Source of the DNA: Selaginella moellendorffii
Taxonomy: Eukaryota; Plantae; Lycopodiophyta
Direction of reading: 5' to 3'
NCBI RefSeq assembly: GCF_000143415.4
Contig: NW_003314262.1
Span: 80,183 to 144,182, forward strand
DNA: 64,000 bases
Shown here: positions 12,438 to 35,154 of the stretch, piece after piece
Layout of the letters: every line of letters begins with the position of its first letter
Position numbering within the stretch: the stretch's first letter is position 1
Translations under genes and position numbers: made by a program
The notes under the pieces: model-generated
Databases searched by the model: none
The model's input: the letters and a program-made list of their open reading frames with translations, nothing else
Told to the model about the DNA's origin: nothing

Positions 12438-14029
12438 TATAGCACATGTGATTTTCACCCTTTATTTTATAGTGATTTACCATAGGATAACTATGAAGTG
12501 GAACATAAACCCTCTATGTGCCACATCATATGCCACGTGCCATATGCCACATGTCTAAGGACAGTGGTGTGGAACCCGAGTTTCAAAGCTTTGGGTCATT
12601 AAACAAAGGTATGAAGCCAAACTCCTAAGTATAGAGCCAAGGAGCAATGGAATCCGACCATGGAGCAACTCCCAAGCATATAGCCCAAGGAACGAAGGGA
12701 CAAGAGCACAAAATGACTTGGAACAGTTCTAGAACATCTAGCATCCCAATGCTAGGACCAACATGCAAAACGAAGCCAAACAAAGTTTAGTGCTATTTTA
12801 GCATACCGATAGCCTAACGTGAGAATATGAGTACTCCACCAACTAACATGGTATGGAACTTGAGCTTAGACCCAAGCTAAACACAGAACAAAGACAGGCA
12901 CGCAAGCAAAAGCTAAATTATGCCTCAGGTTGGTCAACTATGCCCAACCTACCCACTATCCTTACTATATAATTGGAACCCTTCATAGTGCGCCCCCCAA
13001 CCCCTGCCCCCCTTCTTTGAGGAACATACGCTTTGGGCTTTCACCCTAAGCCTCCCTTAGTACTAGGAGTTGGGATAAACTTAAAACTTACTAAATATAG
13101 AATGTCTTTAAATTGCCAATTTGGATAAGGGATGAATACCATTGTGTTTAAGATAATCTCTACATTCTGTAGATATGCCAAATGAGCAAATCTAGACACT
13201 TTCCATAAATAGCATTTGGGATTGGATTGAGACTAACAAAAAGGGCATAATAGCGAGGGTGTTTGGTAAATACGGTAAGTTATCATCTAGCGATATTAAG
13301 AAACTAGTCTCAATACACGAGGGTTTTTATCACTAGCTAGTGTAAGACATAACGAGATGGGAGCTCTTTACTGGGCTAAGTATACTTAGCTAATAGCACG
13401 TAGGAATTTTGTCCTTATGCTCATTTGGTCTAAATACACTCAAAATGCCCAATTAACTCCACTAGCACAAAAGGGACTGATAAAGGGTTTAGCAATACTG
13501 ACATCCTGCTATCATGGCAGTAAAGAAAAATATCCAAAAGGACAACTGACAAGTAATTTTCGATACCTGAAGTCACGTTTGTGACACTCTTCCCCCCTTA
13601 GGGAAGATTGATGTCCTCATTGATATATATTCTAATCTAGAATATTGTTAAGGAAATAACTTCACAAAAAGTTCACGGTATTCACTTTGTGAGAAATGCA
13701 CCAATTTAAATGAGTTAGGCTAACCTCTTTGTCTAATGCAAATGCGCTACCAACTCAGACACATTTCGGCCATCACCGACAAAAAAATGACTAGTGGAGT
13801 GTGAGACACAAAATCCCTAGGCCCCAAAGTGGAGCTGGAAGGGTGCCACGTGGTAGTGGCCGAAGTGAAAGCCAAACGAGCATAACACGTTTGGACCGAA
13901 AGCTCCGACTTGAAAAGTTGAGAGCGGGAGTGGAACTCCCAACAAAGGGCTCGAGGAATGAGCACGAAGCTAGCAATAAGCAAGGCTCCAAAAAAAGGAC
14001 CCAAAAGGACCAACACATGACACGTGGAA

Positions 14030-14525
14030 GAGTCTGAGATGGACCCGAGATGGATCCGAGTTGGAGTCTGAGATGGATCTGAGAAGGACCCGAGATGGAG
14101 TCCGAGATGGACTCAAGATGGATCCGAGTTGGAGTCTGAGGTGGAGTCCGAGATGGACCCGAGAAGGACCCGAGATGGATCCAAGTTGGAGTCTGAGGTG
14201 GAGTCCAAGATGGACCCGAGATGGAGTCCGAGATGGAGTCTGAGATGGACCCAAGATGGAGTCCGAGATGGACCCGAGATGGAGTCCGAGATGGAGTCCG
14301 AGATGGACCGAGACGGAGTTCGAGATGGAGTCCGAGATGGAATCCGAGATGGAGTCCGAGAAGGACCCGAGATGGAATCCGAGGTCGAGACCGAGACTGG
14401 GACTGAGACTGAGACCGGGACCGAGACCGGGACCGAGATCGGGACCGAGATCGGGACCGAGACCAAGGCTGAGGCCAAGACCGAGCCCGAGTTTGAGTCC
14501 GAGTCCGAGTCCGAGTTCGAGTCTG
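14030..14525 (+). repeat. GAGATGGAGTCC/GAGATGGACCC and GAGACC/GAGTCC tandem arrays inside family-A LTRs (also ~28100-28505, 33765-34150, 44925-45492; related arrays in family-C LTRs)
   Basis: Directly visible 11-12-mer and 6-mer tandem units whose copy number differs between LTR copies. Confidence 0.95.
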
Positions 14526-15130
14526 AAAGGGTGAAAGCCCAAAGCATTCATCTCCTAGACCCTGGGGGGTTTGGTGAGCTCCAAAAGTATAGTAAGGGGG
14601 AGGACTACAGTGGAGCCAGTTTGGCTAGGAAAGGCCAGTTTGGCCTAGGAAGGCTGTACCCAATGTTGGGTGATGAGCTGCCCACTGGGAAGTCTAAGAC
14701 TAAAGTGAACATGGACCGACAAGCGGGGTAGCTTGGTGAAGTGTTCAAGAGCCAGCTCTAGTTCCCCTGGGAGATCGACTAGTCGATGCTCCCAGTCCAA
14801 GTGTGGGTGGCACTACCTACTTGGATACCTAGCGTGGCTCAACAGAACCTCGCTCTAAGCCCATGGCTAGAGCACCTAAAGGCGGAAGGTGGGGAAAGTA
14901 CCTACGGGGCTCGCGTAAGGCCGCGGTGTTCCGAAATGTTGCCCTAAAGTCCCAAACTAGGGAAAGGAGGAGGAGCAGTCCTCTAGTGTAGTGACTAAGG
15001 ATACAGTCACATGGTGAGGAAGACCTAGAGGACAATGGGACTGAGTGGCCGGGCCTACGGGCCTTGATCTAGTGGCAGTGTTGGCGAACATGGCCATGGA
15101 CAGAAAAGGGACTTGGTAGGAACTGATAAA

Positions 15131-15154
15131 AAGCTCTATTTCGTTAAAGTGGGA
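15131..15154 (+). repeat. Left terminal inverted repeat
   Basis: aagctctatttcgttaaagtggga. Confidence 0.92.
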
Positions 15155-15849
15155 TTTATTCAGTAAAATGGGACTAGGTACAAATTTTCAAGTATTTGAA
15201 AATGATGTGAAATTATATGTTTTTTGTCCAGGGGCTAGACATATCTGGGGCATGGTGACTAGCGCGGTGACTTTGTGTCCAGACTGAGTCCATCTGGTTG
15301 TATAATAAATCTCATTGTCAAAGTGAACAAGCCGAATCTGAAGTTAAAGAAGAGCGATGGCATGCGCGCACACACTATTTGTTTGTTCATTGAGCGTGTG
15401 GTGAGCTTTCCAAGATGAACGTCATTCCTATTAGCCAGACATATAACCTAATGGTGAGAACATTTAGATATTATTCAATGTTATCTTTTTCTAACGAATC
15501 TAATTGTGAAGGTGTAGCAAGAGGCATTGCTAGTCTGGAGAAGTCATTTAACTCATTTGACCCTTAGTGTATTTTCATGAAACTAAATAACATTCATATT
15601 ATTAAGGAATTTCTCTAGTACCTTTTTTTTACGACATAGAGGCTTGCATTTCTTTCAAAGGTGATTTAGTAAAAGGCCTAAGGGCACATGCCATTCTATT
15701 TCTCAGACCAGTATTAAGATATACTAGTGCAAAGGGAAAAAGGTATTTGGTGATCAAGTAAATGGCATGAGGGCACATGCCATTATAAGCCTAAGCACTA
15801 GTGGACACCTCCTTTTTGGTGTCACGCCTCACGCCATCATGCCATGCCA

Positions 15850-18800
15850 TCACACCTCCTCTGATTCAGATTCGGATTGTTCACCTTGAAATAAAATACA
15901 TTAGAAACTTAGTAAAGGAATATTAATGAATCTCACCTTGAACCCGGGTTATGAATGCTCTTGCTGCATCTCTTGCATGGTCTGGCAAGGTGATGGTGGC
16001 ACTCTACTTCCGCATCCAACCATGCACAACATTATCCACCGATATGCTCATGCTGGGATCCCTTGGATTCAGCACCCATCTCTTTTCTAGGCAATCCTTC
16101 GTATATCCGGAACTTGGCTTGAACCACTCCACAGTTACATTGAAGGAGTTAGTTTCCGCGTCCTCCTCTGCATCAGTGATGCAGCGCCCCACCCATATCA
16201 TTTGTTTTTTATTACTGGGTCTAACAAGCACGACCATTCCTTTGTAGACCTGTACTGGATTGAATGCTGAATCCGGCTTCTTGTTCCTCGGCCCACAATA
16301 GTGATCCTCAACATCGTTATCTGTCACTGCATTTCCAGAGGACATTGTTCCGCTACTATCTGGTGCTCTAGGTTCTGGCCAAAAGGACTCTTCCAATTCT
16401 TCATATACAACCGGCCCATTTTGGATAGCAGATATAATCTTCTCCCAGTATTCAAGTAAAGGCTTGCACCTCTTAAAATAGGATTCTCCACCAAACACCA
16501 ACCCCCTCTTCCAGAAGGCAATATGTTGTCTAATCCTGGCCACTATACTTTCCTGGTCTTTGAGTCCATCCGGGTGCATCGGCCGTGGGGAACCCTGAGG
16601 AATCATAGGTTCCCCAGTTATGGGATCTCTCTTGAAGAGTTCAATGCCATCCATTGGCAGCCACACTGTGTCCCATTCTCTCATCTTGTACCTTATCACT
16701 GGAGCACCGTCACGCATGCTGAAATGAAACTGAAGAGGCTTGGAGTGGCCAATCAGCGTTTCAGATCCGTCCCTGATGTAGCCTCTTACAAACCCCTTAA
16801 AGTCTGGAACCTCTGTCACAAGTGCAGCTTCAACAGTGCCTTTGATGCAATTTTGGAATTCATCGTAGAGTTGTGGGAGGGTGAGGACATTGGATCGCCG
16901 GAGGGACTCTGCCAGGTGACTGAACATGGCATCGACGTCTTCATGAGTGTGCCCAACCATGAGAAAGCCAAGTGTAACCGTTTCAAATATGCCTTTGGCA
17001 ACAAGCATCGCCAAGTACGCGAAGACGTACATGTTTTTGTTCTCACTGCTAGCATTGTCTGTTTGGAGCAGAAGATGGGGTGGAAGGCCACATCGGCCGC
17101 AAGAACTTCCTTGAGATTCTGCTTCGTTTGGATGAGGCTGTGCATTCACCGGGCGACCAGCCTCGTCGGAATGGCATGAGGCCTCACGTGATAACCCTAC
17201 AATCTGACGGCCAACATATTCACTGGGATGGCATGGGGCCCCACGCGATACTGCAAGCCTTTGCTCCTCCTCCAGCTGAACCCTATATGGGGTTCGATCG
17301 ACAAGGGCCTTATGCAAGGGTTGGCCGTTCAGCTCAGTCTGCGCACTTTGCAGAGACCTTAAGTGTTTTGCTAGGGACGCAATCATCATGTTTGCATCCC
17401 CACCACCCCATAGAGGTACAAAGAAGTTCCCATAGTTCTGGGCACCATGCCCATGAGCGATTATGCCAAACAGAGACACAGGCAGCTGCATGGATGAAGA
17501 GATTGCCTTGGGGGCAAGATTGAGTCGAGGTAAGCACGTCTTTTTCTGGTCCATTTTGTCGTGGATGATGCAGAGGTAAGAGTCAGGTCTCTCCATGGAG
17601 AGAATCCTGTTATGATAATATACAGTCCTGCAGCTTCTCTGCTCGATGTTGTGGTCGAGCCGCCTTCTAACCAACGTCTCTCGCTCTTGAGCGCTGCAAG
17701 AATTCTTCGACAAAGCCATTTTGATAGCAGTGCACTCGTCACACTTTGAAAAGCTGGAGTACTTTCCTATACTCACATCCCTGAACCTGTTGCTCCACAA
17801 TCTACTAAATCTAGATTGGCTCAGCTTCCTGTAGCCATTACTCTGGAGTTCCCGATTCACATCTTCCAATATGGCCCCCTTGGTATACATGGAAGGGAGA
17901 ACTCGTTGGGTGTCTCGTGTTCCATCTTCCAAGAGGTGGGTTTTATGTGGTTGCTGCTCGCTACATGTCTCGACAAACCTTTTGAAGATTGCCTCTCCAT
18001 ATACAACATGACCCCTGGTTTTGTGCGTACCGTCGTTCCCATGGACTACCTGTTGAACCCTTTGTTCCTCGAACTCAGTTTTGATTTTGTAAAATGTGCT
18101 TCGAGGGACTCCATAAATGATTCTCCATGCCTTCATGTAGACCAAACCCCTCTGGAAGACCATGCCCCCCACCTGATGTTCTGAAGCATCAACAGATGAC
18201 CGTAATGCCTCATACACAAAATTGCGAGCTGCCTTCCAGGACAATGTCTTGTATCTTGCTCTCTCCTCTTCAATAGCATCCCAATCAGCATGTTGACAGC
18301 ACCTCCTCTTGCAACAAGCAACTGTCGAGACCATTCGAACCTCCATCGCCATTTTCTGCCTTTTCGGTTCGTTGCTCAGATCCCTTTGGCTGCGCTTTAG
18401 GAAGGTGTACTTTCTTTTCCCATGAAGAGATGTTCTGTCATCAGTTGTAGTGGTGTTTGATTGTGAATCCTTCACATTCTCAAACACTAAATGCCTCAAT
18501 TTCCACCGCACAATGCTTCCAATAGTCAGGTTGTTTTCTTCTGTGTCAACAACCTCTAAAATCGCAACTCCAATATCATCCCAGCCCAATTCTTGATTAG
18601 CAACCGCATCTCTTGGATCGACAACTGTGGCTAAGCCCTCAGCTACCACCTCCCCCTCGGGGTTGTTTATAAACACCTTTGCCTGAATCCATGTAGCACG
18701 GTTCTTAAGATCCACGGAGGGAACATGCGTCGCACTTGCGCTGTCCCCAACATCTGCTTTCTTCTGCAGATTTTTCAAGGCAACAACAACATTTACCCCG

Positions 18801-18993
18801 ACGACCATCTCTCCTCGTTCAATAGCGACCACATTCCCATCGAAGACAGTCTCTACTGATACAGCAGCATTGCCTTCCCCAAGCCTTTGACAGTGTATAA
18901 CAAAGTTCCGATCCATAGACACAAGGGTCCCTTTTGCAACTCTCTTTCCACCATTCAAAATGTAAACCTTTTCCCCAACCCTGAAGGCTATTC
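15850..18993 (-). CDS. Sola-like DDD transposase (984-aa ORF 16004-18958) with N-terminal Tnp1/EnSpm-like repeats and a C-terminal BAH/SH3-like barrel; probable premature stop near the end
   Basis: SKCDEC, IIHDKMDQ, LQTDNASSENKN and GFLMVGHTHEDVDAMFS give CxxC plus three catalytic Asp. An acceptor near 18993 implies upstream exons. The frame continues past TAG 16004-16006 into a 52-nt intron (15885-15936) and a last exon ending at TGA 15850. Confidence 0.85.
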
Positions 18994-19554
18994 TGAAAGT
19001 GTAGAAAAGAAGTTAAGACCATACAAAAAATGATTGGAGAATGGCCTAAATCATAACATACCAAATAGCATGAGGCCACATGCCATTATTCAAACATGCT
19101 ATTGACACCCACGTGAAATTTCGCATTCACAAAATTGGCATAAGCCCTCATGCCATTAGTGGTACCACTAATGGCATGAAGCCTCACGCTATCTTTGGCC
19201 CCTGCTAGCCTATTGCTATATTCCTTTTGCCTTGCTGCAACTGGTATATAATTTTTGTGTGCGTGACTAGTCACCCATACAAAAATATATACAGTTGCAG
19301 CAAGGCAAAAGGAATATGGCAATAGGCTAGTAGGGGCCAAATATGGCATGAGGCCTCATGCCATCTTGATATACACACAGCTGTAGGCAAGTAAAAACAT
19401 ACATGACAATACGCTAGCCATGAAATTGCAAGGGCCCAAGATGGCATGTGGCCTCATGCCATTTCTAAATATGGTCCTAAACCATTCCATGGTGAACATA
19501 CCAGGAAGCACAAGTGCCGAATATCAAGAGGAAGCGGTAGCCACACCAAAGACA

Positions 19555-19770
19555 GTGCCGCTCGCAACACTGCAACTACTCGTAGCACCGCTCGCAACAC
19601 CGCAATTGCTCGTAGCGCCGCTCGCACAAACTGCCACTCGCATAAACTGCCGCTCGCAATGGCGCTCGCAATGCCGCAACCGCTTGTAGACGCATAAACC
19701 ACAGCTCACAACGCCGCTTACACAAGCAGCGCTCACTGCGCTCAGCGGAACCAAGAACACGGCGCACAAA
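19555..19770. repeat. Degenerate tandem repeat with CGCTCGCA core (~30-bp then ~15-bp units) upstream of the transposase
   Basis: gtgccgctcgcaacactgcaactactc / gtagcaccgctcgcaacaccgcaattgctc / gtagcgccgctcgcacaaact... Confidence 0.8.
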
Positions 19771-20485
19771 AATGATAGACCTAGGAATGAGTTCGAGAAT
19801 TCAAAAATAACACACGCTTGAACGTCACATCAAATCCTCTGACAAACCAGATCTTATGATTCCTCTGACAAATTTCAAACTGAGTAGCTTCTAGACTTTG
19901 CTGTCGGAGGTTGAACTTTGTCACATCATGTCCTTGCCTCAATCCAGCTGTGCCATGTCAGTGATTCGAACTTTGTCATGCCATGTCAACGATCCGCGCC
20001 AAGATTATTCGCCGTGTAAAGGAATAATTATGCTGTGTGTGTACGTCCATTTATGGCAATATAAGGCCACACACCATTCAAAGAATAATGCTAGTCAAGC
20101 ATTTTTTGGTGCATTTTTGGGTTCAAAATTGCATGAGCCCACACGCTATAAAGTTTACCTGTACCAAAAATAGAAACAGCTTTATTTACTTGGGAATTTA
20201 AGTGGTTGAGGCATTTTTAAACTTACAAACACATGCCCTACTTACATTCCTTTGGTTGCTTAAAATTCAAAAATATTATAAACCTTTCTTTTTGCATTTT
20301 CAATGTTTTCAATTATGGTTTTTGATTTTCGCAGGATCAGCCTAGTAATCTATTTGCATCCCGTCATGTTTATAGCTAGCTTTCATTTGTCCCCTTCGCT
20401 AGCCTGAGATACATCTGCTTGGCATCTGCCTCTTACAGCATTTGCCCAGAAAGGGCATCTTTCTTCACGCAGCATTTGCCACATG

Positions 20486-20511
20486 TTTAGGGTTTAGGGT
20501 TTAGGGTTTAG
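20486..20511 (+). promoter_or_regulatory. (TTTAGGG)3.7 telobox / interstitial telomeric motif between the two divergent genes
   Basis: tttagggtttagggtttagggtttag; a regulatory role is inferred only. Confidence 0.6.
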
Positions 20512-21399
20512 CAATTCAATAGCTTGATAAACATGCAAATACAGAACTTGATGCAAAATCCTTTGATATGTCACAATGCCCCTAGGACCATAAACACATT
20601 TCAATAGAGAGGGTCCTTTCATTTTATAACTCCTTACGTAGATCTTGGTGAAACTAGAGTTAGTGAAGTTGGTTTCTTGTGATCCCACATCTGATTGTGA
20701 TGTCCCTTTGCAGTGTCGATGGAAAGGTCAATGCACACCAAACTGTAAAATCTTGGAGCAAAATAACAGTCGGATCTATGGCAAATGCCCCTGAAACATT
20801 GTAAGGCTCGTGTGGTCTCATGTGGTGTCCGATCGAGATGCTTCTTTGCAGGGTCATCAAGAAGGACATTGTATACCGTTCTGTAAAATCTAGTTGCGAT
20901 CTAACGGTTGGATCTCCAGAAAACTCAAAACAATCTCGCGCGTGTCAGAATATTCTAGGAATATACTCCTATGTGCCCCTGAAAATGGCATGCGGCCCCA
21001 CGCCATTCAAGAGATAACGCCAGATAATGCCGAGCATTTTTTGGTGCATTTTTTGGGATCAAAATTGCATGAGCCCACACACTTGAACGTCACATCAAAT
21101 CCTCTGAAAATTTATTTAGCTGAACATCTGGCATTTTTGGAAATACAAGATGCCTTGGAATATCCAATCATGCATGGTATAAATATAGCGAGGGTATTAA
21201 ATGATATCCCAATCATGATCTTTCTTTTGGATTTCACGTGCATGCAGTTCGAGGAATGATGATGTTGCGGATTTCTTTTGGATTTCACGCACGATCCAGA
21301 AATTAATGGTGGCGCCCAAGTCCGAGGAATGATGACGTGGTGGGATTACCAATCGTCGTGACATTTCGCGCGTGTGAGGTTAGGTTTTGCATTTTGCTT

Positions 21400-21610
21400 C
21401 GTACTCGCGCTCGCACACTCGCGCTTGCATCGCGCTCCCACTCGCGCTCCCACTTCTCTACAGGTTTCTCGTGTGCATCGGCGTCCACTCGCGCTGGCAT
21501 CACACTCGCGCTCGTGTGCATCGGCGTCCACTTCAAGACACACCCAGTTTGTAACTTCGCCGCCAACTCCGCCGCCCACTCCACGCAGCCCACTTGGCGT
21601 CCCGGGAGAT
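21400..21610 (+). promoter_or_regulatory. CpG-rich CTCGCGCT repeat tract, probable promoter/5' UTR of the cargo gene
   Basis: actcgcgctcgcacactcgcgcttgcatcgcgctcccactcgcgctcccac..., directly upstream of ATG|gtaagt at 21725. Confidence 0.45.
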
Positions 21611-21724
21611 TTTAGCGCCACTCTCCAACTGTAAGTGGCAGAGTAGCCTTGCTGTTACGATCCGCTACACACACAGTGCACATTCGCCAGCGAGTCCGGT
21701 TGTCACGCCTCCATTCGGCTTCAA

Positions 21725-24700
21725 ATGGTAAGTCTTTTAGGCCAAGTAGAAAATGGCATGAGGCCACATGCCATTCAGTAGCAACATTGGCATGCACCGA
21801 TTGGGCTCTCGAGTGTAGTCCGGTTACAGATGGCATGTAGTCTCACACCATCTTAGGATGCAGCCTCAAGACATTTGATGCAGTGGTGAATGGCGTGTGG
21901 CCTCACGTTATTTCCAGCTGCTAGCTTTTCATCTGTCAGCTCTAATTGTTGTGCATTTCTGAACAGGCGAGGAATTGCGTTCTTCTTCCAGCCACTGTCA
22001 ATGTGGATGCAGAGAAGGGGGAGGAGCTCACCAGTTGGACTTTCGGGATGGAAGGCGAGGATCTGAGGTTGTACAACACAGATGGTGGGAGAAAAGAATG
22101 CATGGGGATCCTCATCCAAGTGACAGACACTCCATGCAGTTCCATGCAAGAATATGGACTGGCACTTGTGGTAGAGACAGCGTCTGCCTTCAAGATCCAC
22201 CTTGCACATCCTAGCGGCTTCCCGGAGGGGGGCAGCGGGTATGAGGAATTCCTAGAGGGAGCTAGGGAGAGGTTGTCCAGGAGGCCCATAATTTCAAAGA
22301 CGCTACGGCGACGTTCAAAAACTATATTCCAACATTGAGCCGTTGAGAGTGCCTCCAGTTCGCGAAGCGAAGGGGAAGGGGGTCGACCTGGAAACTACCC
22401 CGAAGCAGAAAAGGGTGGTCAAGCTCAAGCCGACGTCCGACTCTCCTCCAAAAAAGAAGCTACTCGGTGATGCCATTGCCTTGGGTTCGAACACTACACC
22501 CACCAAAAAGAAGAGCCGCAAAGAGCAGAAAGAGCAAGAAGAGGCAGCAAAAATCGTCGCAGATAATAGTACTTGTTACTATTCCAACAAAGTATATACA
22601 ATCGACGTGAGCCGTATCGACATCCAAAGCAAATACAACCACAGGCTAGTATCTGATGAGTGGGTGGAGAAACTGAAGCAGAAGATGTTGGCAAGTCTAG
22701 TAACACCCGACATCGCAGACGTGATCCCCTACTACCGAACAATGAAGGGCGAGACGAGGTTTCCAAACTTGATCAATAGGAAGGTGTTGGACGATCAGAA
22801 CATCCAGTTCTATGCCGTCTCCGGGCAGCATTCTAGCTTGGCGATGCAAGAGATAGTTGTGGATATTATGGTTCTCCTACGCGCAGAATGTCAAGCAAGA
22901 AACGTGCTACAAATTGGGTCTGCACGAGACATTGGCACGAACACGGAAGCTTTGGGTTCAACTGAAGAAGCCACAAAAACCAGGACAAGGACGTGCACTA
23001 GCAACTAGCGCCTGGTAGGTAAGCCTCGTTGCATGTGGCATAGCATGTGGCCTCATGCCATTTCCATTGCAGAAATTCTCGAGTCTTCTCTCGAAAACAC
23101 TGGGGGTCAATGACACACTTAGCATCCATAACATTCTACTCGCGACAAAAGTTGTTTTTGAAAAATAGGTAGATGTGCTAAGGAGGTACCATGACGGGGA
23201 GTTGCTAAACTCAATGGGTGTGGAGGACGGCCAGAAGCCCAATGATTTGAAGCTCAACGCCTTGCGTTTCTCGCGGTCTCTAGACGACGACGACCTTCTG
23301 ACAGTGGCTAATGCTCTTCTACGTGGTGAGGTAGTCTTCAACAAGACCAAAATGACTCCCGGCCATATTGTGACATACGAGGACTTGTGCACGACTCTGA
23401 GAGCTCGTGCGCTATTGAAGGATTGGATCTTCGAGCAAGTGGCCGTGGAGAGGGTGAGCATCGACACCACGCAAGAGATGATGGAAGAGCTGGAGTTGTC
23501 AAATGAAGACATCGACGAGTACATGAAGGGGGCCCCCAAGTTCATCGATCTGCTGCGGGATGCCACGAAAAGTAAAGCTGAGAAGTTGGATCAGTATCCA
23601 AATTTCATTAAGAGGGATGTCGACCGCCGGCTTCAGAAACAGCTCGACCCCGCAGCAGAGGCCTATCAAGAACCTTATCGGGTATACGTGAATTCGGATG
23701 AGGATCAAAGGTGGAGGAGCATCATTTCCCGCGGAGATGAGCAGGTCAAGAACATCTTTTGTGTGATGGACTTCACAAACGAGGAGATCACTCATGCAGA
23801 CGAAGTCAGCTCCATCATTGACTTAATGGTGGGACTTGCGGAGGTGGAATCTTCAGTCCACTATATGATCTACGACTCCGAATCCTATCACAAGTTCTGG
23901 AAGGCCTTGAACGAGGTGAAGGCTCGGTTGAAAGGCAAGGAGATGCGGGAAATCTATGGGATAATGGCTAAGAAGAAGATACCGACGAATGTCCGTATCT
24001 TCACACTCGCCCTTGTTATTGGTCCTGCAGCAGAGTGGGACTGGAGTGACTTCCCAGCTTCGTTCGACAAGGCTGATCGAATTGATCTAAGGGAGGTCAA
24101 TTTACCCGTGCCTGAGGAACTGAAGACGGCTATGGAGCTTTCGAATCCAGAGAAAGCTCCAGGTGCAGCATGGGAAATGCTCAGCTGGGTCTTCAACGCA
24201 ATAGCGGGTGGGTCACCTGCTTCCGACTCCAAGGGCAAATGCATTGTCGAGTATAACTGCGGCAGACTATTCTTTCGAGCCGCACTACTCAAGGGTGTCC
24301 CGTGTGTTGCGGTGACAAACTCCATTGAAGAGGTGACTTCAATGGAGCATATAATTACAGTTGCCAAAGAAAAACAGTATCTTCTCTGCGAACCTGGTGA
24401 GTACGCACTTTAAGTTTAAATGTTATCTCACAAGCTCTGTATGCAGGAGCGTGGCCACCCCCAGATGCTGAAACGGCGTTAACAGCTACTGTTGAAGATA
24501 CCCATGTTGGGCCGAGCTCACAACCTGCACAAGGTAAGGTCACGTGAGGCCTCACGCCATTTTGATTATAGATCGTTGTGAATATTCAGACACGAGGACT
24601 GAAAAGCGTACTGGTGGCGCGTCGAAGAAGGACAAACAGACAAGCAATAGGAAAAAAGGAGGTACAAATTATATTTGCAATGGCGTGTGGTCTCATGCCA

Positions 24701-27220
24701 TTCCTTGCAGAAGACACTTCTTCAAAGGCAAAACAGGCAAGCACCAGCCAAGCTCAAACTGACAGTGGTTATAAAAAGCGAAAGCACGTTGGACAGTCGT
24801 CGGGATCAGAGGCGTTTGATTCGAAAAGGAAGAAGGGCAACGAAAAGATGATAGGTAATGCCTCGCGGTTATGGCGTGTGTGCTCATGCCATTCATTGCA
24901 GATCAAGGGCTGAGTGAAAGCAGGCAGTCACCACCTCCTGACTCAGATTCCTATGGCGGACTCCCCTTCCCCAATCTCAATGGAGAGGTACAATGGATGA
25001 GGGATGCTTTTCAAGTCAGGGCCACGTTTTTCTCATCTCGTCGTCTTCGAAGGGTGCAAGAACGTGTAGAAACCATGTTAAGACAGTCGGGTGAGGATAC
25101 GGTCCTAGGTCACGCACTAAAACAAGCTATGGATGTCTTGTATTTTGAGATGGAGACTCGGCTAGATGATTTTCCCAAGATGGTCCTAGAAGAACAAGCC
25201 ATCCAGCCTGAGCAGCCTATGGAAGAAATGCAGGAGGGGGATGAGGAGCCAGAGAAAGATAATGAGCAGGAAGAGCAGAAGGACGAAAAGGAGGACAAAG
25301 AAGAGGAGGACGAAGAAGAGGAGGATGAAGAGGACTTGGATGGTCCTCACAATGGTGACGATCACAATAACGACGACGACGATGATGACGACGATGGCCA
25401 GCCTGAGGTGGCCAAAGAGCAACGGAGGAAGGTCATACAAGACAAACCATCAGGTAAATAATAGTACATCCATTCCTAACCTTTTACCATTTCTAACATT
25501 GTCCATGTAGGTCGCAGAGAAAATGGTAAGTAGAGATTATTCAGTTGAATTTACAAACTCTAGCCTTTAGTGTCGAGGAAGGATAGTGCCAAGCAAGGGT
25601 CGAAACGTATGTCCAATCCTTCAGAATCAGTAGTGCGCCCAAGTGATATCGGTCCTAGTTCCTCAATAGCAGTTGATGGTAAATACAGTATAGTCGATTC
25701 AATGTGCTAATGAGTTTGTTTTTAGTAGCACGGGAGGATACCATCTCAATCGAAGGGAGATATTTGGACATGCATATGGATCCGCCAGTGGACTTTACTT
25801 GCCTGCAAGAGTCATCAGAGCTGGTGGAGGCTACTACCCATATCAACGCCAAGCAAGCTGACCACGCTCCACTTGATGCTGCCCATACCACTGAGTCAAT
25901 CTTGTCCACGTATCCAACTGACGGTGACCAGGCGCCATTGGACCCGCATGAGGCCGCCCCAGCCGCCAAGCCGGTTGTATCCTCATTTCCAACGGACTCA
26001 ACGTGTGCCCAATCGTCTGACTACGCGCCGTTGGAACCTCCCTACACCGCCTCTGCTGCCTGTTCGGTCATGTCCACTTTGCCAACGGAGGCACCAGCTG
26101 AAATGGCGTGTGATCACACGCCATCGGAACCACTCCATGCCACTGTTGAGCCAGTTGTACCAGAGTCTACAGCTGAAATGGCATGTGCCCACACGCCATC
26201 GGATGCGATTGACCCCACATTGCAGAGGAGAGTATTTCCGCCCTTCACGTTTCCTCGACCAAAACCCTCTCAACGACCATCGGGAGCACCATTCGCTAAT
26301 ATTGTAGATGGTAAAATTGACTTGTACCATTTTTTATGCTGACGCATTTCATTTCAGAGTCACGGCGAAGGTACTGTATCATTTTTGATCTGAACGGTGT
26401 CCTTTTCTCCCATGAGCGTGGCTCGTCCTCGAATGTCATTGCACCCTCCAAAGCCTGCGGTCGCAAGTTGGTCAAAAGAGACAAATTCACATTAATCACA
26501 TGGGAGAAATTGCGGGATCTAATAATGACCATGCGACACTTAAAATAGAGGGCCAGGTTCAATTTGCAATTGGGAGTTTGGACATCCATGATGCGCCACA
26601 ATGCATTAACGTTGCTACAGATGATGCACGATCAGACGCAAGTAATATTACCATTTGACTTTCTCCTAACGCAGGAGGATTGCTTGACTATGGTCCATGT
26701 GAGGGGTAGCAAGCCCATCTTCGTCAAGCCAGAGGCTGTAGTGATGAACCGGACTGCTAGGTCAAGTGAAATCCTCATCATCGATGACTCACCGATTAAA
26801 ACTGCAGCGAACACGCACACATATGCAGTGCACCCCATCTCTTGCAGTATGGAAAATAGGGAGAAGAAACCGTATGTTCTGGGGGACCTTGCAAAATGGC
26901 TTGGAGCGATGGTGATAGAGAACCGGCCAGTCCAGGAGGTGGCTGCAGAAATCAACCAAATGGCAGATGGAACAGTATATCAGAAGCCATTTGATCGGAC
27001 ATACACCAGTCATCATTTATGGCATGTATATTGTCTAGCCAAGCACTATCCGCATCTCCATAATCTACTCAACCAGATGGGTTCTTCGACCACTGAACAT
27101 GAGCATGGACATATTAGAGAAGAGATGGCATTACTATTGGGTTTAAATCCTGATAGTGTGGAGAGTGATGAAATTCCAAGATTATTGTATAGGCATTGGA
27201 GGCAAAAAATAACAGTCTGA
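21725..27220 (+). pseudogene. Transposon-borne multi-exon gene: ParB/DGQHR-like domain, N6/N4-DNA-MTase-like fold, acidic and Pro-rich linkers, FCP1/NIF-type HAD phosphatase; disrupted in this copy
   Basis: ORF pieces join through GT-AG introns 23019-23072, 24397-24446, 24534-24589, 24662-24710, 24855-24901 and 26311-26357 with consistent phase. Motifs: IDVSRI..R.VSDEWVEKLK..FYAVSGQHS; NPEKA..GKCIVEYNCG..AALLKGVPCVAV; IIFDLNGVL, GVWTSM, KPIFVK, ILIIDDSPIK. Lesions: frameshifts near 22300 and 22865, and in-frame TAGs near 23016, 23166 and 26546. The 5' exons and the exons at 25454-25728 are unresolved. Confidence 0.7.
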
Positions 27221-27638
27221 GATGGCATGTATTTATTTAAAAATGTAACTTATTATGGCATGGGGTTCCATGCCATTGTATTAATATTAAAAGACAATTC
27301 TTTGAGAGGATTTGCATTATACTAGAAGTGTTACAGCATGTTATTGGAAGTCTACGAAGTTGTTTTATTAATAAGGGGAAAGTAAAGATTGAATGGGGAC
27401 TTGGGCTCCACCTAGACTCGGAGCAACTGAGCCAATATTAAAAGGATGGAAAGAAATTGGACGACGATGACAAGGAGAAGAGAGAGGTGAAGCAGTGGCA
27501 GGGGGAGGAGAAGTGATTGAGTAGACATTTCCTTGTTTAAAATAAAATGGCATGTGCCTCAATGCAGTTGAATTTTGTTATATTTATATACTATATAAAG
27601 GTTTGGAAACTTTATTTTACAAGTGGGATAATGACAAT

Positions 27639-27662
27639 TCCCACTTTAATGAAATAGAGCTT
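27639..27662 (-). repeat. Right terminal inverted repeat
   Basis: tcccactttaatgaaatagagctt. Confidence 0.92.
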
Positions 27663-27895
27663 TAAAGGGATATTGGGAAAGGCTATTCCCCATGTCTATG
27701 GGCATCCTAAGGATGCTAAGGAGTGGATCTGGGAAGACCACTCGTGGACGGATGGCCCAATCCTTGAGAGACGGGACTGTGATGCAAGTGGTATTGGACC
27801 ACCAATGCAGCAAAGGTGAATGGGCATGGCCTTAGTGTAACAGGCCTTGTGACACCCAAATGTGGTACCTTTGGGTGTCGGTCATGGGACCAGAC

Positions 27896-30800
27896 TGTGA
27901 GACACAAAATCCCTAGGCCCCAAAGTGGAGCCGGAAGGGCGCCACATGGTGGTGGCCGAAGCGAGAGCCAAACGAGCGTAACACGTTTGGATCAAAAGCT
28001 CCGACTTGAAAAGTCAAGAGCGGGAGTGGAACTCCCAACGAAGTGCTCGAGGAACGAGCACGAAGCGAGCAAAAGGCGAGGCTCCAAAAAGGGACCCAAA
28101 AGGAGTCCGAGATGGAGTCCGAGATGGACCCGAGATGGAGTCCGAGATGGAGTCCGAGATGGAGTCCGAGGTGGACCCGAGATGGACCCGAAATGGAGTC
28201 CGAGATGGAGTCCGAGATGGACCCGAGATGGAGTCCGAGATGGAGTCCGAGATGGACCCGAGATGGACCCGAGATGGAGTCCGAGATGGAGTCTGAGATG
28301 GAGTCCGAGATGGAGTCCGAGATGGAGTCCGAAGTCAAGACCGAGACCGGAACCGAGACCGGGACCGAGACCGAGACCGAGACCGAGATCGGGACCGAGA
28401 CCGAGACCGAGGCCGAGGCCAAGACCGAGCCCGAGCCCGAGTCCGAGTCCGAATCCGAGTCCGAGTCCGAGTCCGAGTCCGAGTCCGAGTCCGAGTCCGA
28501 GTCTGGAGCCTGAGAGGGTGAAAGCCCAAAGCGTTCGTCTCCCAGACCCTGGGGGGTTTGGTGAGCTCCAAAAGTATAGTAGGGGGAGGACTGCAGTGGA
28601 GCCAGTTTGGCCAGGAAAGGCCAGTTTGGCCCAGGAAGGCCAGACCCAGTGTTGGGTGATGAACTGACCACTGGGAAGTCCAAGACTAGAGTGAATACGG
28701 ACCGACAAGCGGGGTAGCTTGGTGAAGTGTTCAAGAGCCGGCTCTAGTTCCCCCGGGAGATCGACTGGCCGATGCTCCCAGTCCAAGTGTGGGTGGCACT
28801 ACCTACTTGGATACCAGGCGTGGCTCAACGGAACCTCGCTCTAAGCCCATGGCTAGAGCACCTAAAGGCGATAGGTGGGGAGAGTACCCAGGTGGCTCGC
28901 ATAAGGCCACGGTGTTCCGAAATGTTGTCCCAAAGGCCCAGACTGTGGAAAGGAAGAGGAGCAGTCCTCTGGGGTAGTGACCAAGGACACAGTCATGTGG
29001 TGAGGAAGTCCCAGAGGACCGTGGGACTTAGGGGTCGGGTCTGTGGGCCTCGATCCAGTGGCAGTGTTGGCAAACACGGCCAGGGGCAGAAAGGGACTTG
29101 GTAGGAACTGACAAAGGGACTTTGGGGAAGGCAATTCCCCAGGTCTGTGGGCATCCTAAGGATGCTAAGGAGTGGATCTAGGATGACCCCTCGTGGACAC
29201 ATGGCCCAGTCTTGGAGAGACGAGGTGGTGATGCAAGTGGTGTTGAACCACTAGTGCAGCAAAGGTGAATGGGCATGGCCTTAGCGTAACGGGCCGAGAT
29301 GTCAGTGGTACCTTTGGGTGTCGGTCTCAGGACCGGACACGTGGAGCACTTGGACCAGGTGCAAGTGTGGAGTGGCATGGATGCCATTCTTGGGGCTAGC
29401 AAGTCCCAAGTCCTGAATTGGATTGATGGAGGTTGTGAATGAGACTCCTCCAAGTGGTCGGAGGTGTGGTTAAGTGACTAAAGTAGAATGGAAAATTTAG
29501 TTGCTTACAATTTGGTATCGGAGCTGTTCCTTAGTCCGACTTTTATTGGTGCTCAAGTATATCACCACTAGTGTTGGCATCGGAAGGTCCGAGGAGTGGG
29601 CTTATCCTTGAGGAGTAGCAAGTCGGGAAGACATGGCTCTCCATTACAGTTCATGTGTGAACTTGTAGACGAGGTGGTGGATAGAAAAGGGTCAATAATG
29701 GAACGACTTTGGGATCTTGGGAACAGTATATGGTTTTCCTCAAAGAGTTGAGGATGTGATCCAGATGAGCGTTTGACTTAGCAAACTAGCTAATGTAGTT
29801 GTGGTAAACAATTACAATTGGGATCACGGGAAAGATAAAGACTCCAAAGCAATAAAGGAGTCACAAGATTTTCCTCATATAGTTGAGGTTGGTGCTCATG
29901 AATGTGAGACCAGAAGTAATGACCGTGGGAGGTCAAATATGGAAGAGGACTCAAGTCCTTGAAAAGGTAGCCGAGGCTACCTCTAATAAATGCTGGAACA
30001 ACCCCAGGAGTTGGGGGTGTATTAAGTGGATGAGTTGGTGTTCTCATCACATGGACAAGTAGTCCTAAGGGGCAAAGGTTGCCCCCAGAGAACAAAATCA
30101 AGTGTCGGAGTAACACTTGTGAAAATAGTCCTTTTGAGTAGGACAGGAATGCAAGAAGTGTATTCCAGTGAGCTAGTGCCTCACAAGTAGGACCTTATGG
30201 GTCTGTGGATTAACCAAGTCCAAAACTGCTGGATGACTCAAGTAGAGTCAACGGATGGTCCTAAAAGGACTGATGGAAGCATTTGGACTGAGGTGTGTTG
30301 TACCCCACAAAGGATGGGGGGGGATCATAGGATCCAAGGATGAGAACGGAGGGTATCTCATCGATGGCAAAATATGCCATGCTAAAGTTATGGGAAAGGT
30401 GTTCCCAGAAGAAAACAACTTTGACACAAAGTTGTGTATGACCTCTATGGTGTAGTGCTAACGGATGGTTGGCATGAGAAAGAGCGGTGTTGGTCTTGGC
30501 AAAGACTTAAACACGAAGGGGAAGTGTCATAGAGGTAGGCTCGTGGAGCTGATGGTGTGGAGATACCAAATGTGCCAAGGTGTGATACCTTGAGGCTATG
30601 TTGGTGGGTTCATGAGAACCCCTTGCCAAAGGAATCCCAATTGGAATGGGAATGGCATAGCCTAAGCGGCAGAGCATGCAGTTGGAGTGCGGTGACCCAG
30701 ATAATGATGGAGGTGTGCAAGCACCAAGCAATGAGTTGTAGGACTTGACAACCATGAGGCAACTAAGCAAGAGGTGCAAAATAATTGGTTAAACGGGTAG

Positions 30801-33800
30801 AAGGTAGCTACCCAAGACTTCTAGTATAGGGAAGTCGGATATACCCTTACGGGGGATAAGTTGCTTATGTTGTGATATAGTAAGTCAATGTCATAAAAGG
30901 AAATACTCATTGTCAAGAAAGCCATCATTGGGACACCCAAACACTCTAGAACACCAGAAGGTGGTGTTTGATGTCGCGAGGGCAATGGATAAAGCCCAAG
31001 GGACTAAGTCCCTAGCGAATGATGGATAGAAGGTGCTATCCAAATGTCCAAGGTTGGGGAGATAGGAGAGGACTGTCTACCCGAGTTGGACAAAGCCAAA
31101 AATGGAATTTTGGCAAGGTTAGTGATGGGCATGTAAAGGCCCATAAGCAACAATGTAATCCCAGTGTGTTGGATTATAAGGTGAGCATACCCGGATTGAG
31201 GAACCACTCCCTAGGCTATTGGGTAGGTTCATCCCTAAGAATACTTGCTAAGGCATGATAGAAAGTGCAAAGCTATCCTCCTGGTCTGGAGGAGAATGAC
31301 CAAAGGAAAGGTGTGAAGCCAAAAAGCAAGAAGTAAGGGGATAGAACCGAACCATAGGAATCAAAGGGCATAACCAAGGTTGGTTATGCCAGCTGGGAGT
31401 GGAGAATCAAGAGGGTGCTCGAGGATGTTGTTGCTAGCAACCGTGATGCCATAGAGAGTCTAAAATATGGAATTGTCCATGTTAGACTATATGGCAACTA
31501 TAAAGCTTGCGAAAGGGGAGGCCTTAGCAAGTTGAGGGACAGAGTTCCTTCAAGGTTCCCAAAGACGATTCTAGGTAGCGTAGTACCTAGAAAGGCCAAG
31601 TGTAAATGGTTCATGGAACGCGCGAAATCAGAGTGGCGTAGCAGAAGCGTGGTCTTGAAGCTTGCCATGAGGCAAGGTTATCAAGGTTAGGGAAGTAATT
31701 CCCGAGTGTTCAAAGAGAGGGCTTTGAACGAAAGTCGATGGTCAAGGACTTTCACGCTTATGCAGGAACCATGTTACAATGGTCGGAGAACTTGCCAAGT
31801 GAGATTGGCACGTCGGGGGAACAAAGACCTTAGTTGAAGGTGATAACTTCAAAAAGGGTGGGCCATGGGGCCGAGCATGGAGGAGTCCATGCATGATCAC
31901 AGACATGTCAAGTGAGAGGACTTGGCAGTGTGGAGGAACTAGGTTCCTAAGCTGTGATCTGTAGCGCGCTTTAAAAATAAGTTGGTGCACCGGCGTGGGG
32001 AGTCACGCCAGGCATCTAGTGTGATGCCGTCCGTAGATGCATATACGGAGGTTGGGTTCGAGTCCCGACCCTCTAGTGCTTGGGTTCAAGTCCCAAATCA
32101 CTAGGGCGTGGTGATGGTTTGGAATATGAGGACACTCATATTTCGGTGGTCATGGACTCTCAGTGGGGAGACTGGTTTGGGCACACCGCCAAGCGAGGGA
32201 TGCCTCGGAGTCGTGATGCACGGTTAGATTTCTTAGTGTGAAAGCTCAGCATATCTAACTTGAACACTTTGGTGCAAGTGGCACCAAGGTCGTGGTGAGT
32301 GAGATGGGGACACCTAATCTCAGTTGCTATGAACCCTTGGCCGTAAGGGCTAGCTTGGGTGCACCGCCAAGTGTGGGGGATGCCCCCGGGGTTATAGTCA
32401 ACAACTTGGAGGTCTAGAAAACCAAGTACCTTTTGGCAACTTTGTTAAGGTGCCAAGGTGAGATCACTAGGTGATCTTATGGCCAGATAAGGACAAGGTC
32501 CTTGGTTGGCTAAGGAATGAAGTTCCTGGTTCAAAAGGTTGAAATTGAACTGTTTAAGGTGGTGTGGCTTGGTCGTGATAACCAAGTGGGAAGAGCACCT
32601 AAGGGAAATAAACTATGTCCGTGCGATGGCATAGTGAGTTCGAGGAAAGTAGTCTCTATAAAAGACCCATGGGAGGGTCATGAAGTTGGGCCGTGGATAG
32701 AGCCCATAGCAGAAGATGCTAAAGAGACGTACTAGGGGTGAACATCCTCCGGACTTGGCAAAGAAGAGTCTTTGCTATGGAACCGAAACAATACCTCAAG
32801 GAGGGAGGTAGAGATTCAATGTTGCTTGGTGCAACAATCAACGGATAGGAGCAAAAGATGAGTGGCCAAGATAGGGCCGTGGAATCCCTTGGAAGGAATC
32901 CAAGTGACAAAGTTAGGCGAGGAACACTAATGTGTTGGACGCTAACAAGTTGCGGGAAAGGAAGTGTGTTTCCAAGGAGGGATTCCGAAATGCTCCGAGT
33001 TGGCGAAAGTGGAAGCTCCAAGGGAGGGAGTGGTAAGGTAGCCAAATGATAGGGCCATGAACAACCCTAGCACAAAGTATGATAACTGGGACTTTGGCAC
33101 GAAATAGAAGAGAGGATGATGGTGCCCTCGAGTAGAGAACTTCCTAGGATGGGAAGTGGAGTTGCACAAAAGGTGCAAGGCAAGGTGTCGGAGACACCTA
33201 GGAAATTGACTCCAAGAAGTCAAAATTCAAAGTTCCAAAGTGCAAAGGTTATATCGATGGAAATTGAGACTACTCGAGAAGGAGTAGTGGGATTGACTTA
33301 GAGAAGGGTCTCTAAGAGGTTTAGCGAGAACTAAACCAATAAAAGGAGAGAACCATTACATGTTGTCCAATCAGTCTCTAAGTTGGAGAGACTACGCTCC
33401 TTAAAGGATGGACAAGGCATGGTGAGCCTTTGATGTCAAACCATAGACAAAGATTGGCTAGGTGCCAAGGATGGAAATGGTAACACGTGTGGGTGTTACT
33501 TTATGAAAGGGTTTACCGTTCGATGAGGACATCGAACTTCGTCTATGGGTGGTGGAGTTGTGAGACACAAAATCCTTAGGCCCCAAAGTGGAGCCGGAAG
33601 GGCGCCACATGGTGGTGGCCGAAGCGAGAGCCAAACGAGCGTAACACGTTTGGACCAAAAGCTCCGACTTGAAAAGTCAAGAGCGGGAGTGGAACTCCCA
33701 ACGAAGTGCTCGAGGAACGAGCACGAAGCGAGCAAAAGGCAAGGCTCTAAAAAGGGACCCAAAAGGAGTCCGAGATGGAGTCCGAGATGGACCCGAGATG

Positions 33801-35154
33801 GAGTCCGAGATGGAGTCCGAGATGGAGTCCGAGGTGGACCCGAGATGGACCCGAAATGGAGTCCGAGATGGAGTCCGAGATGGACCCAAGATGGAGTCCG
33901 AGATGGAGTCCGAGATGGACCCGAGATGGACCCGAGATGGAGTCCGAGATGGAGTCCGAGATGGAGTCCGAAGTCGAGACCGAGACCGGAACCGAGACCG
34001 GGACCGAGACCGAGACCGAGACCGAGATCAGGACCGAGACCGAGACCGAGGCCGAGGCCAAGACCGAGCCCGAGCCCGAGTCCGAGTCCGAATCCGAGTC
34101 CGAGTCCGAGTCCGAGTCCGAGTCCGAGTCCGAGTCCGAGTCCGAGTCTGGAGCCTGAGAGGGTGAAAGCCCAAAGCGTTCGTCTCCCAGACCCTGGGGG
34201 GTTTGGTGAGCTCCAAAAGTATAGTAGGGGGAGGACTGCAGTGGAGCCAGTTTGGCCAGGAAAGGCCAGTTTGGCCCAGGAAGGCCAGACCCAGTGTTGG
34301 GTGATGAACTGACCACTGGGAAGTCCAAGACTAGAGTGAATACGGACCGACAAGCGGGGTAGCTTGGTGAAGTGTTCAAGAGCCGGCTCTAGTTCCCCCG
34401 GGAGATCGACTGGCCAATGCTCCCAGTCCAAGTGTGGGTGGCACTACCTACTTGGATACCAGGCGTGGCTCAATGGAACCTCGCTCTAAGCCCATGGCTA
34501 GAGCACCTAAAGGCGATAGGTGGGGAGAGTACCCAGGTGGCTCGCGTAAGGCCACGGTGTTCCGAAATGTTGTCCCAAAGGCCCAGACTGTGGAAAGGAA
34601 GAGGAGCAGTCCTCTGGGGTAGTGACCAAGGACACAGTCATGTGGTGAGGAAGTCCCAGAGGACCGTGGGACTTAGGGGTCGGGCCTGTAGGCCTCGATC
34701 CAGTGGCAGTGTTGGCAAACACGGCCAGGGGCAGAAAGGGACTTGGTAGGAACTGACAAAGGGACTTTGGGGAAGGCAATTCCCCAGGTCTGTGGGCATC
34801 CTAAGGATGCTAAGGAGTGGATCTAGGATGACCCCTTGTGGACACATGGCCCAGTCTTGGAGAGACGAGGTGGTGATGCAAGTGTTGTTGAACCACTAGT
34901 GCAGCAAAGGTGAATGGGCATGGCCTTAGCGTAACGGGCCGAGATGTCAGTGGTACCTTTGGGTGTCGGTCTCAGGACCGGACACGTGGAGCACTTGGAC
35001 CAGGTGCAAGTGTGGAGTGGCATGGATGCCATTCTTGGGGCTAGCAAGTCCCAAGTCCTGAATTGGATTGATGGAGGTTGTGAATGAGACTCCTCCAAGT
35101 GGTCGGAGGTGTGGTTAAGTGACTAAAGTAGAATGGAAAATTTAGTCGCTTACA
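27896..35154 (+). mobile_element. LTR retrotransposon A2, structurally complete non-autonomous (LARD-like) element
   Basis: TSD CAGAC (27891-27895, 35155-35159). Near-identical LTRs 27896-29509 and 33559-35154. PBS TGGTATCGGAGC at 29513 (tRNA-iMet type), PPT 33545-33558. The 4-kb interior has no long ORF. Confidence 0.95.

Follow-up and report, generated by a model that had tools for sequence, protein, structure and literature searches.

Transposases and TnpA are sequence-specific regulators of their cognate copies, and the En/Spm reader evolved from the DNA-binding domain of the transposase (bioRxiv 10.64898/2026.08.24.746577). VANC21 binds motifs arrayed in the non-coding regions of VANDAL21, and these targets evolve by tandem-repeat formation (PMC5735166); the VANDAL motif is family-specific, dense and rare elsewhere, and diverges between related families (PMC5735166, PMC10398659). 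The Hermes transposase binds subterminal repeats (PMC10368747), and the Sola superfamily is made up of the eukaryotic DNA transposons Sola1-3 (Bao et al. 2009, as cited in PMC4455052). Here we describe a 12.5-kb DNA transposon of Selaginella moellendorffii that spans positions 15131-27662 of a 64,000-nucleotide stretch of contig NW_003314262.1 (the whole stretch is called the window below) and carries, besides a gene for a transposase of Pfam family DUF7869 and a second, “cargo” gene, 24 copies of one palindrome. In En/Spm, TnpA recognises 12-bp motifs that lie in both orientations, including tail-to-tail pairs; the ends are brought together and the promoter is regulated or de-silenced.

With maize En/Spm (CACTA) and its TnpA, the window element shares many copies of an element-specific motif in non-coding DNA and, putatively, a reader that the element itself encodes. 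It differs in that its motif is a full 22-24-nt palindrome distributed over the whole 12.5 kb, whereas the En/Spm motifs occupy the subterminal 200-300 bp, and in that the transposase belongs to DUF7869 and not to the CACTA-type Transposase_21/24, with a 4-bp target-site duplication (TSD) and termini that are not CACTA. A dense family-specific motif is also found in VANDAL21/VANC21, with tandem arrays similar to those of three relatives of the window element (loci L002, L013 and L019); the VANC motif, however, is 9 nt long, asymmetric and in one orientation, and is read by a dedicated accessory protein of a Mutator-like element, whereas the window motif is palindromic, belongs to another superfamily and has only the transposase conserved with it. 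As for the hAT element Hermes, its multimeric transposase likewise binds several internal end repeats besides the terminal inverted repeat (TIR), building the transpososome (PMC10368747); in Hermes these repeats are short, occur only at the ends and are bound by BED zinc fingers, whereas the window has 24 long palindromes element-wide and a transposase of a different fold family. The parS palindromes of ParB/parS systems, at about 16-22 bp and near the gene of the proposed binder, are similar, and loading and spreading would be compatible with many dispersed sites; unlike in those systems, no ParB N-terminal domain was detected by sequence or structure, and relatives without the cargo carry palindromes.

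Sola elements have a 4-bp TSD. Like them, the window element is TIR-bounded and apparently cut-and-paste, with a 4-bp TSD and a DDD/E-like transposase of about 1000 aa; Pfam, however, places this transposase solely in DUF7869, and of the grounds for Sola membership, proposed in an earlier reading made from the letters of the window without database searches (the sequence-only reading), only the TSD agrees. No description of palindrome arrays in Sola or DUF7869 elements was found in a literature search, the coverage of which was incomplete and which is not proof of novelty. What sets the element apart from the known systems is the long palindromic motif, its element-wide spread, including introns and in-frame linkers, and the superfamily.

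The element and its palindromes

The limits of the transposon were confirmed from empty sites and from an independent copy. In three paralogous copies the host repeat is uninterrupted at the insertion point, with a single (C/T)AAA each, where the transposon is flanked on the left and right by the 4-bp TSD TAAA. The independent copy, L001 (a Logan contig from another sample), is 97% identical and internally deleted; it terminates exactly at the position equivalent to 15131 and is followed by different, unrelated flanking DNA, and the family has therefore moved. The TIRs are 27 nt long (15131-15157 and 27636-27662); as computed, the arms comprise 28 nt (15130-15157 / 27636-27663) and are 93% complementary. 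A composite or nested structure of the 12.5 kb was ruled out, with zero internal copies of the TIR. The 12.5-kb transposon bounded by TIRs and TSDs in the sequence-only reading is thus confirmed, as are its two divergent genes, an open reading frame (ORF) for the transposase running from 19012 to 16007 on the reverse strand and a second gene running from 22292 to 27220 on the forward strand. It would be a young, autonomous, cut-and-paste element of a DUF7869-transposase family, with the transposase ORF open and the second gene already broken. The ends and genes are as follows.

15127-15130, no strand: left TSD, TAAA (paralogous empty sites with a single (C/T)AAA)
15131-15157, forward strand: left TIR, AAGCTCTATTTCGTTAAAGTGGGA... 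(inverted-repeat detection; the L001 copy ends at 15131)
16004-19012, reverse strand: transposase ORF, 1002 codons, no internal stop, ending in TAG (Pfam DUF7869)
22292-27220, forward strand: cargo gene, 11 exons, 1,475 codons, modelled from 22292 and ending in TGA at 27218
27636-27662, reverse strand: right TIR (inverted-repeat detection)
27663-27666, no strand: right TSD, TAAA (empty sites)

The palindrome ATGGCRTG-N6-CAYGCCAT was found 10 times exactly and 20 times at up to two mismatches in the window, all within 15357-27276, against 0.00-0.03 matches expected from shuffled sequence. When up to three mismatches were allowed at a spacing of 6, 24 sites were obtained within 15131-27662, and the same scan outside the transposon gave just two weak, chance-like matches, at 5949 and 31990. 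The half-site ATGGCRTG occurs 19 times in the transposon and not once in the rest of the window. The earlier count of about 24 palindromes confined to the element therefore stands, with 24 sites inside and, those chance-like matches aside, none in the remaining 51 kb; so does the description of an element-specific palindrome resembling a self-recognition code. As in VANC- and TnpA-like systems, the motif is dense and family-specific, lies in non-coding DNA and is rare elsewhere. Alignment of the 24 sites gave a core of 22-24 nt with the consensus AATGGCATG-nGGCCn-CATGCCATT. Outside this core the information content drops to zero and the flanks of the 24 sites are unrelated; what is repeated is therefore a self-contained unit rather than a segment of longer repeats. 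On direct comparison, the TIR and palindrome sequences are unrelated. The palindromes, none of which is assigned a strand, are distributed as follows.

15357-15837: four left subterminal palindromes (15357, 15673, 15762, 15816), in the first 700 bp
17171-17249: two palindromes (17171, 17228), in frame within a transposase linker at about residues 588-614
19065-19462: cluster of five just 5' of the transposase ORF (19065, 19135, 19171, 19343, 19441)
20128-20149 and 20985-21006: two isolated intergenic palindromes
21753-21911: cluster of three 5' of the second gene (21753, 21830, 21890)
23040-23061: palindrome filling the mini-intron 23019-23072
24539-24892: three palindromes (24539, 24680, 24871), one each in the mini-introns 24534-24571, 24662-24710 and 24855-24901
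26103-26199: two palindromes (26103, 26178), in frame, in a cargo exon
27255-27568: two right subterminal palindromes (27255-27276 and a degenerate one at 27547-27568), in the last 410 bp

Twenty of the 24 palindromes are non-coding and the other four lie in unconstrained coding linkers. The 3.3-kb stretch separating the divergent genes holds 10 of them, and in four of the cargo gene's ten mini-introns a single palindrome makes up most of the length. The transposase linker that holds two is a hypervariable insert in the alignment, with a predicted local distance difference test score (pLDDT) below 50 over residues 594-639 (disordered), and the exonic pair at 26103/26178 belongs to a 75-nt duplication within a low-complexity exon rich in Pro and Thr (AEMACDHTPS, AEMACAHTPS). 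The palindromes thus fill places that are free to vary in sequence, and constrained coding sequence is avoided; such placement is the pattern expected under selection for site number.

Two larger inverted repeats were also seen around palindromes. One, of 73 nt (19171-19243 / 19292-19364), is 92% complementary, with its arms 48 nt apart, and is found on the upstream side of the transposase ORF; the second, at 15318-15889 in the left subterminal region, has 47-nt arms (79%) around 478 nt. The R/Y-degenerate position of the motif is part of a CpG (ATGGCGTG/CACGCCAT versus ATGGCATG/CATGCCAT), and many of the relatives' palindromes are CpG-rich. Comparison of the window and L001 copies gave 39 transitions and 8 transversions, an excess of transitions that is consistent with methylation-driven decay. 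The CpG content suggests that the putative binding of the palindrome could be methylation-sensitive.

Palindromes of related transposase loci

For comparison with relatives, contigs L002-L004 were taken from assemblies and metagenomes gave 422 relatives, of which 80 loci were kept; the whole set comprised 84 loci and 927 kb. The exact window palindrome was found in none of these loci, and near-matches with one or two mismatches are present in L001, which is the deleted copy from the window element's own family. In at least 12 related loci, the transposase gene lies beside arrays of a different, lineage-specific palindrome of 18-28 nt, against 0.00-0.01 expected after shuffling. In L002 and L011 the palindrome is CCTATGGC-N6-GCCATAGG, with 20 sites in L002 against 0.01 expected; the non-palindromic spacer of L002, TATGTG, is conserved as well. 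L005 has TTGGCCAT abutting ATGGCCAA, L003 and L006-L009 have GCTCAAAC-N4-GTTTGAGC, and L004 has TTATCCTCGA-S-TCGAGGATAA. In L013, ten copies of CACGGGTG-N2-CACCCGTG flank the transposase ORF on either side, and L034 has CACGGGCG...CGCCCGTG; L019 has 11 copies of TACGGACG-N2-CGTCCGTA, and L044 has TACGAACG-N2-CGTTCGTA. L012 and L038 each have a palindrome of their own. The transposase coding sequence of the relatives is nearly free of half-sites.

A maximum-likelihood tree of the transposases places loci with related motifs as sisters with full support. These motif-sharing groups are L013 with L034, L019 with L044, L002 and L011 together with L005, and the GCTCAAAC clade (L003/L006/L007/L008/L009); the deeper branches of the tree differ in motif. 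The motif therefore diverges together with an element-encoded protein, the palindromes grouping as the transposase tree does. At the level of sequence, this agreement shows shared descent of motif and transposase rather than the identity of the binder.

The relatives' palindromes are often in regular tandem order, repeating every 47, about 53 or about 153 bp; arrays of this kind at L013 51-351, L019 4839-5118 and L002 3087-3957 recall the tandem-repeat evolution of VANC targets. Two further palindromes were seen close to the ends of transposase ORFs. An 18-nt palindrome, TGGTGTTTATAAACACCA, lies just 3' of the transposase stop in both L005 (5169-5186) and L014 (4028-4045), which are on different branches, and differs from the array motifs of these two loci. 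In L019 a degenerate copy of its palindrome lies at 6977-6994, in the transposase region near the ORF end at 7035, possibly marking another palindrome-bearing intron.

No trace of the cargo gene was found among the relatives. Searching the 84 loci by tblastn with eight pieces of the cargo ORF (E<=0.01) gave no match, and neither L002 nor L019 has a substantial second ORF in the palindrome-bearing DNA available upstream (4.6 and 5.5 kb, respectively). As far as the contigs extend, at least 12 relatives in which the cargo gene is lacking thus keep palindromes, specific to their lineage, and this speaks against the cargo as the palindrome reader that the sequence-only reading had made of it.

The transposase and the cargo gene

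The transposase matches DUF7869 in Pfam with E=7.7e-43, and precomputed Pfam annotation of its relatives gives DUF8039. A weak N-terminal match to Transposase_23 (TNP1/EN/SPM) lies below the cut-off both for the window protein (E=0.034) and for P0002 (E=6.6e-4). Homologues comprised 26 full-length or partial sequences with 27-43% identity, plus one 96%-identical fragment. Their alignment contains the invariant motifs IIHDKMDQ, LLQxDN and GHTHEDxD, three acidic motifs that look like a DDD/E triad. The ORF has no ATG at the position where the homologues start, and a splice-acceptor-like sequence lies at about 18994, which makes an additional 5' exon upstream likely.

Pairwise identity among the transposases is 31-37% in the N-terminal regions versus 48-56% in the catalytic core, and the variable N-terminal part contains a CCx3CC motif. 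An AlphaFold2 model based on the 26-sequence alignment (mean pLDDT 72) has helix-turn-helix (HTH)-like helical elements at residues 244-315. A Foldseek search of the PDB with this model brought up no solved transposase core among its top matches. Its N-terminal tandem small beta-barrels (residues 15-177) matched KOW, Tudor, Agenet and Spindlin domains, and its C-terminal barrel (residues 926-1000) matched the BAH readers EBS, SHL and AIPP3 and the first BAH domain of DNMT1 (probability 1.0, E about 1e-2). On the strength of the model, the transposase may carry chromatin-reader-like modules.

The cargo gene model was built by junction-by-junction checks; an unconstrained automatic spliced-ORF search was discarded, as it over-splices. 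All ten introns (23019-26357) are canonical GT-AG introns of 38-67 nt in phase 1, and six of the ten splice-model equally well without a palindrome. Introns 23019-23072 and 24855-24901 are alike beyond the palindrome, including the exon edges ..TAG/GTAA..CCTCG and ..CATGCCATT(C)CATTGCAG/A (the slash marks the exon edge); there are hints that the cargo introns were gained through duplication or insertion of a palindrome-bearing unit. The features of the gene that bear on its proposed functions and on its integrity are as follows.

22808-22834, forward strand: peptide FYAVSGQHS (translation)
23006-23008, forward strand: first in-frame premature TAG, four codons before the donor at 23019
26384-26818, forward strand: NIF/FCP1-like HAD phosphatase-like region (sub-threshold Pfam NIF)
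26546-26548, forward strand: second in-frame premature TAG, within the NIF-like region

Reassignment of the stop codon was considered for the two TAGs and rejected, because TAG also terminates the ORFs for the transposase, a pentatricopeptide repeat (PPR) protein and gag. Since the genome uses TAG as a true stop, the cargo gene is broken in this copy.

A K-rich stretch resembling a nuclear localisation signal (NLS) precedes ...IQFYAVSGQHS... in the cargo, and this peptide, which lies in a 104-residue exon, was the basis for the proposed ParB/DGQHR-like fold. The peptide is present, but the searches for such a fold were negative. Exhaustive phmmer comparison of the exon with 1.84 billion protein representatives gave no match, nor did Pfam at E<=10, including ParBc, DndB and DUF262; PADLOC and NCBIfam gave nothing relevant, phmmer against PDB sequences gave noise only and no ParB or Srx, and tblastn against 72,556 plasmids rich in parB gave one match at E=4, to a hypothetical protein that is not ParB. 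The conserved-Arg motif (GxxR / DGQHR) is absent, SGQHS having Ser in place of Asp and again in place of Arg, and a closer “DGQH” arises by chance at 17206 in a non-coding frame of the transposon. Because no homologues were found, there was no alignment for modelling; the AlphaFold check proposed for this domain was run on the single sequence and returned a model (mean pLDDT 39.7, predicted template-modelling score 0.28) too poor for structure search and uninformative as to the fold.

Two other domains had been read into the cargo. The 414-residue exon, taken for MTase-like, contains no methyltransferase family at Pfam E<=10 or NCBIfam E<=1 and has no PDB match. Its sole profile signal, probably noise, is weak similarity to HamA/DUF1837 in PADLOC (E=0.0016, 15.8 bits; 23775-24008, residues 203-280 of the exon). 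The phosphatase domain was likewise unconfirmed. The NIF-like domain is split by the in-frame TAG, and its pieces were searched separately; the C-terminus matches Pfam NIF (PF03031) with E=0.0037 and 17.4 bits, below the cut-off of 21.8, over profile positions 55-126 only. HAD motif I, DxDx(T/V), lies ahead of this match in the same frame and in this single copy reads FDLNGV, with Asn for the second Asp. The NIF-like exon has no PDB match. In protein searches no homologue was obtained for the 104-residue, 414-residue or NIF-like exon. The cargo gene, which possibly includes an FCP1-like module, is thus an orphan that might serve a new accessory function.

The transposon was inserted into one copy of a host repeat family of about 5.6 kb, whose copies in the window lie at 13800-15130 plus 27663-29400 (the interrupted one), 33500-35030 and 44700-46350. 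The host repeat contains internal tandem repeats of 11, 12 and 23 nt, and its long ORFs have no Pfam match. Elsewhere in the window, an intronless PPR gene of 881 residues lies at 6921-9566 on the forward strand (PPR_2, E=1.2e-84), and a Ty3/gypsy-type gag ORF with a zinc knuckle lies at 56574-57719 on the reverse strand (Retrotrans_gag, E=3.8e-13), within a retrotransposon region with repeats at about 50-59 kb. These two genes, chiefly the PPR gene, suggest a plant-like host.

Readings of the palindromes

Since the relatives each have their own palindrome, the palindromes are more likely to be docking sites for the transposase than for the cargo, and the transposase, as the only protein conserved across the palindrome-bearing lineages, is the most likely candidate reader. 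On balance we lean towards the palindromes being self-recognition sites that are read by the transposase, or by an isoform derived from it, for end assembly and/or self-regulation. They would be the family's own protein-docking sites, with many copies of a different 18-28-nt dyad in each lineage, and a dyad symmetry with half-sites of 8-12 nt suits a dimeric binder. The transposase would bind the palindrome as a dimer through its variable N-terminal part (CCx3CC and the HTH region); the alternative reader would be a DNA-binding isoform derived from the transposase, the lineage-specific cargo protein being an unlikely one. Palindrome density is high in the subterminal DNA and the divergent promoter region, and also in introns and disordered linkers. 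Through binding, the protein would gather on copies of its family, where it may help to assemble or pair the ends, and/or would activate the two divergent promoters of the element or shield them from silencing. We infer both the binder and the effect of its binding, and the role is proposed because of the analogy with En/Spm TnpA, VANDAL VANC, the AtMu1 transposase and Hermes.

Several observations weigh against reading by the transposase. As the TIR is unrelated to the palindrome, either the transposase would have two specificities, or its recognition of the ends would rely mainly on subterminal sites. The HTH-like stretch (GIxKxxFYRYK) changes fairly little between lineages with differing motifs and does not by itself point to the specificity determinant. 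The palindrome-bearing relatives are all on short contigs (1.7-9.4 kb), among which no complete TIR-bounded relative with both ends was found, so that an unrelated accessory gene may lie beyond the sampled DNA. Most of the distant relatives on long metagenome contigs lack a recurrent palindrome; these may be decayed copies, or palindromes may be restricted to one clade.

The sequence-only reading had assigned the palindromes to the cargo, which, with an N-terminal ParB/Srx/DndB-like fold, would recognise parS-like palindromes and coat or modify its own element. This we consider very improbable. The cargo is real coding DNA, its 1,475 codons open across 10 canonical introns, it has the NLS-like stretch ahead of the peptide and it sits in the sole lineage with the window palindrome; moreover, En/Spm-type two-protein systems use the accessory protein, and not the catalytic transposase, on repeated motifs (bioRxiv 10.64898/2026.08.24.746577), and the TIR differs from the palindrome. 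These points are outweighed by the lack of a homologue among the 1.84 billion representatives, of a profile match, of a ParB or Srx in the PDB and of plasmid parB similarity, by the missing defining Arg (with the closer match in a non-coding frame) and the poor AlphaFold score, by the relatives that have palindrome arrays and no detectable cargo, and by the two premature TAG stops in this copy. Similarly far-fetched, in our judgement, is an extended version in which DUF7869 transposons use a fast-evolving palindromic code, read by a co-evolving element protein, to license their own copies by end assembly together with promoter activation or anti-silencing, each lineage having its own 18-28-nt dyad seeded through the whole body, tiny phase-1 introns and in-frame disordered linkers included. 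The lineage of the window element would moreover have recruited the 1,475-codon orphan as a chromatin or DNA modifier loaded at the sites, with a ParB-like loader fused to an FCP1-like module.

It is also improbable that the palindromes act through nucleic-acid structure (a cruciform or hairpin affecting transcription, mini-intron splicing or small RNA) or through host transcription factors. Perfect dyads of 22-24 nt, four of which fill introns of 38-54 nt, and the 73-nt inverted repeat built of palindromes upstream of the transposase would suit such a role, and the CpG in many motifs, with the degeneracy on CpG, suggests an interplay with DNA methylation. The motif, however, differs with the transposase lineage, as expected for a co-evolving element-encoded reader and not for a conserved host factor; the sequence itself is conserved and not merely its pairing, down to the TATGTG spacer of L002; and six of the ten mini-introns splice-model equally well with no palindrome in them. 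We hold it unlikely, too, that the palindromes have no binding function and were spread by local tandem duplication or introner-like insertion, persisting where harmless, even though the relatives' arrays are regular (47, about 53 and about 153 bp), the two exonic sites derive from a 75-nt duplication, two introns are alike beyond their palindrome and all ten introns are in phase 1. Plain segmental duplication does not yield 24 sites that share just a 22-24-nt core between unrelated flanks. Moreover, arrays arose or were kept in many lineages, always as a dyad with 8-12-nt half-sites typical of dimeric DNA-binding proteins, and both subterminal regions, like the divergent promoter region, have more than their share of sites.

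If the transposase reads the palindromes, as we favour, the family offers a natural series of matched protein-DNA pairs, with no fewer than eight different palindromes spread over a single transposase tree. From it one could learn how transposons shift the specificity of self-recognition, avoiding cross-mobilisation or escaping silencing, and the window element would show how genes can accommodate binding sites by means of mini-introns and disordered linkers. The principle seen in VANDAL/VANC and En/Spm/TnpA, where an element protein reads a family-specific array of motifs, would then extend to a poorly studied superfamily.

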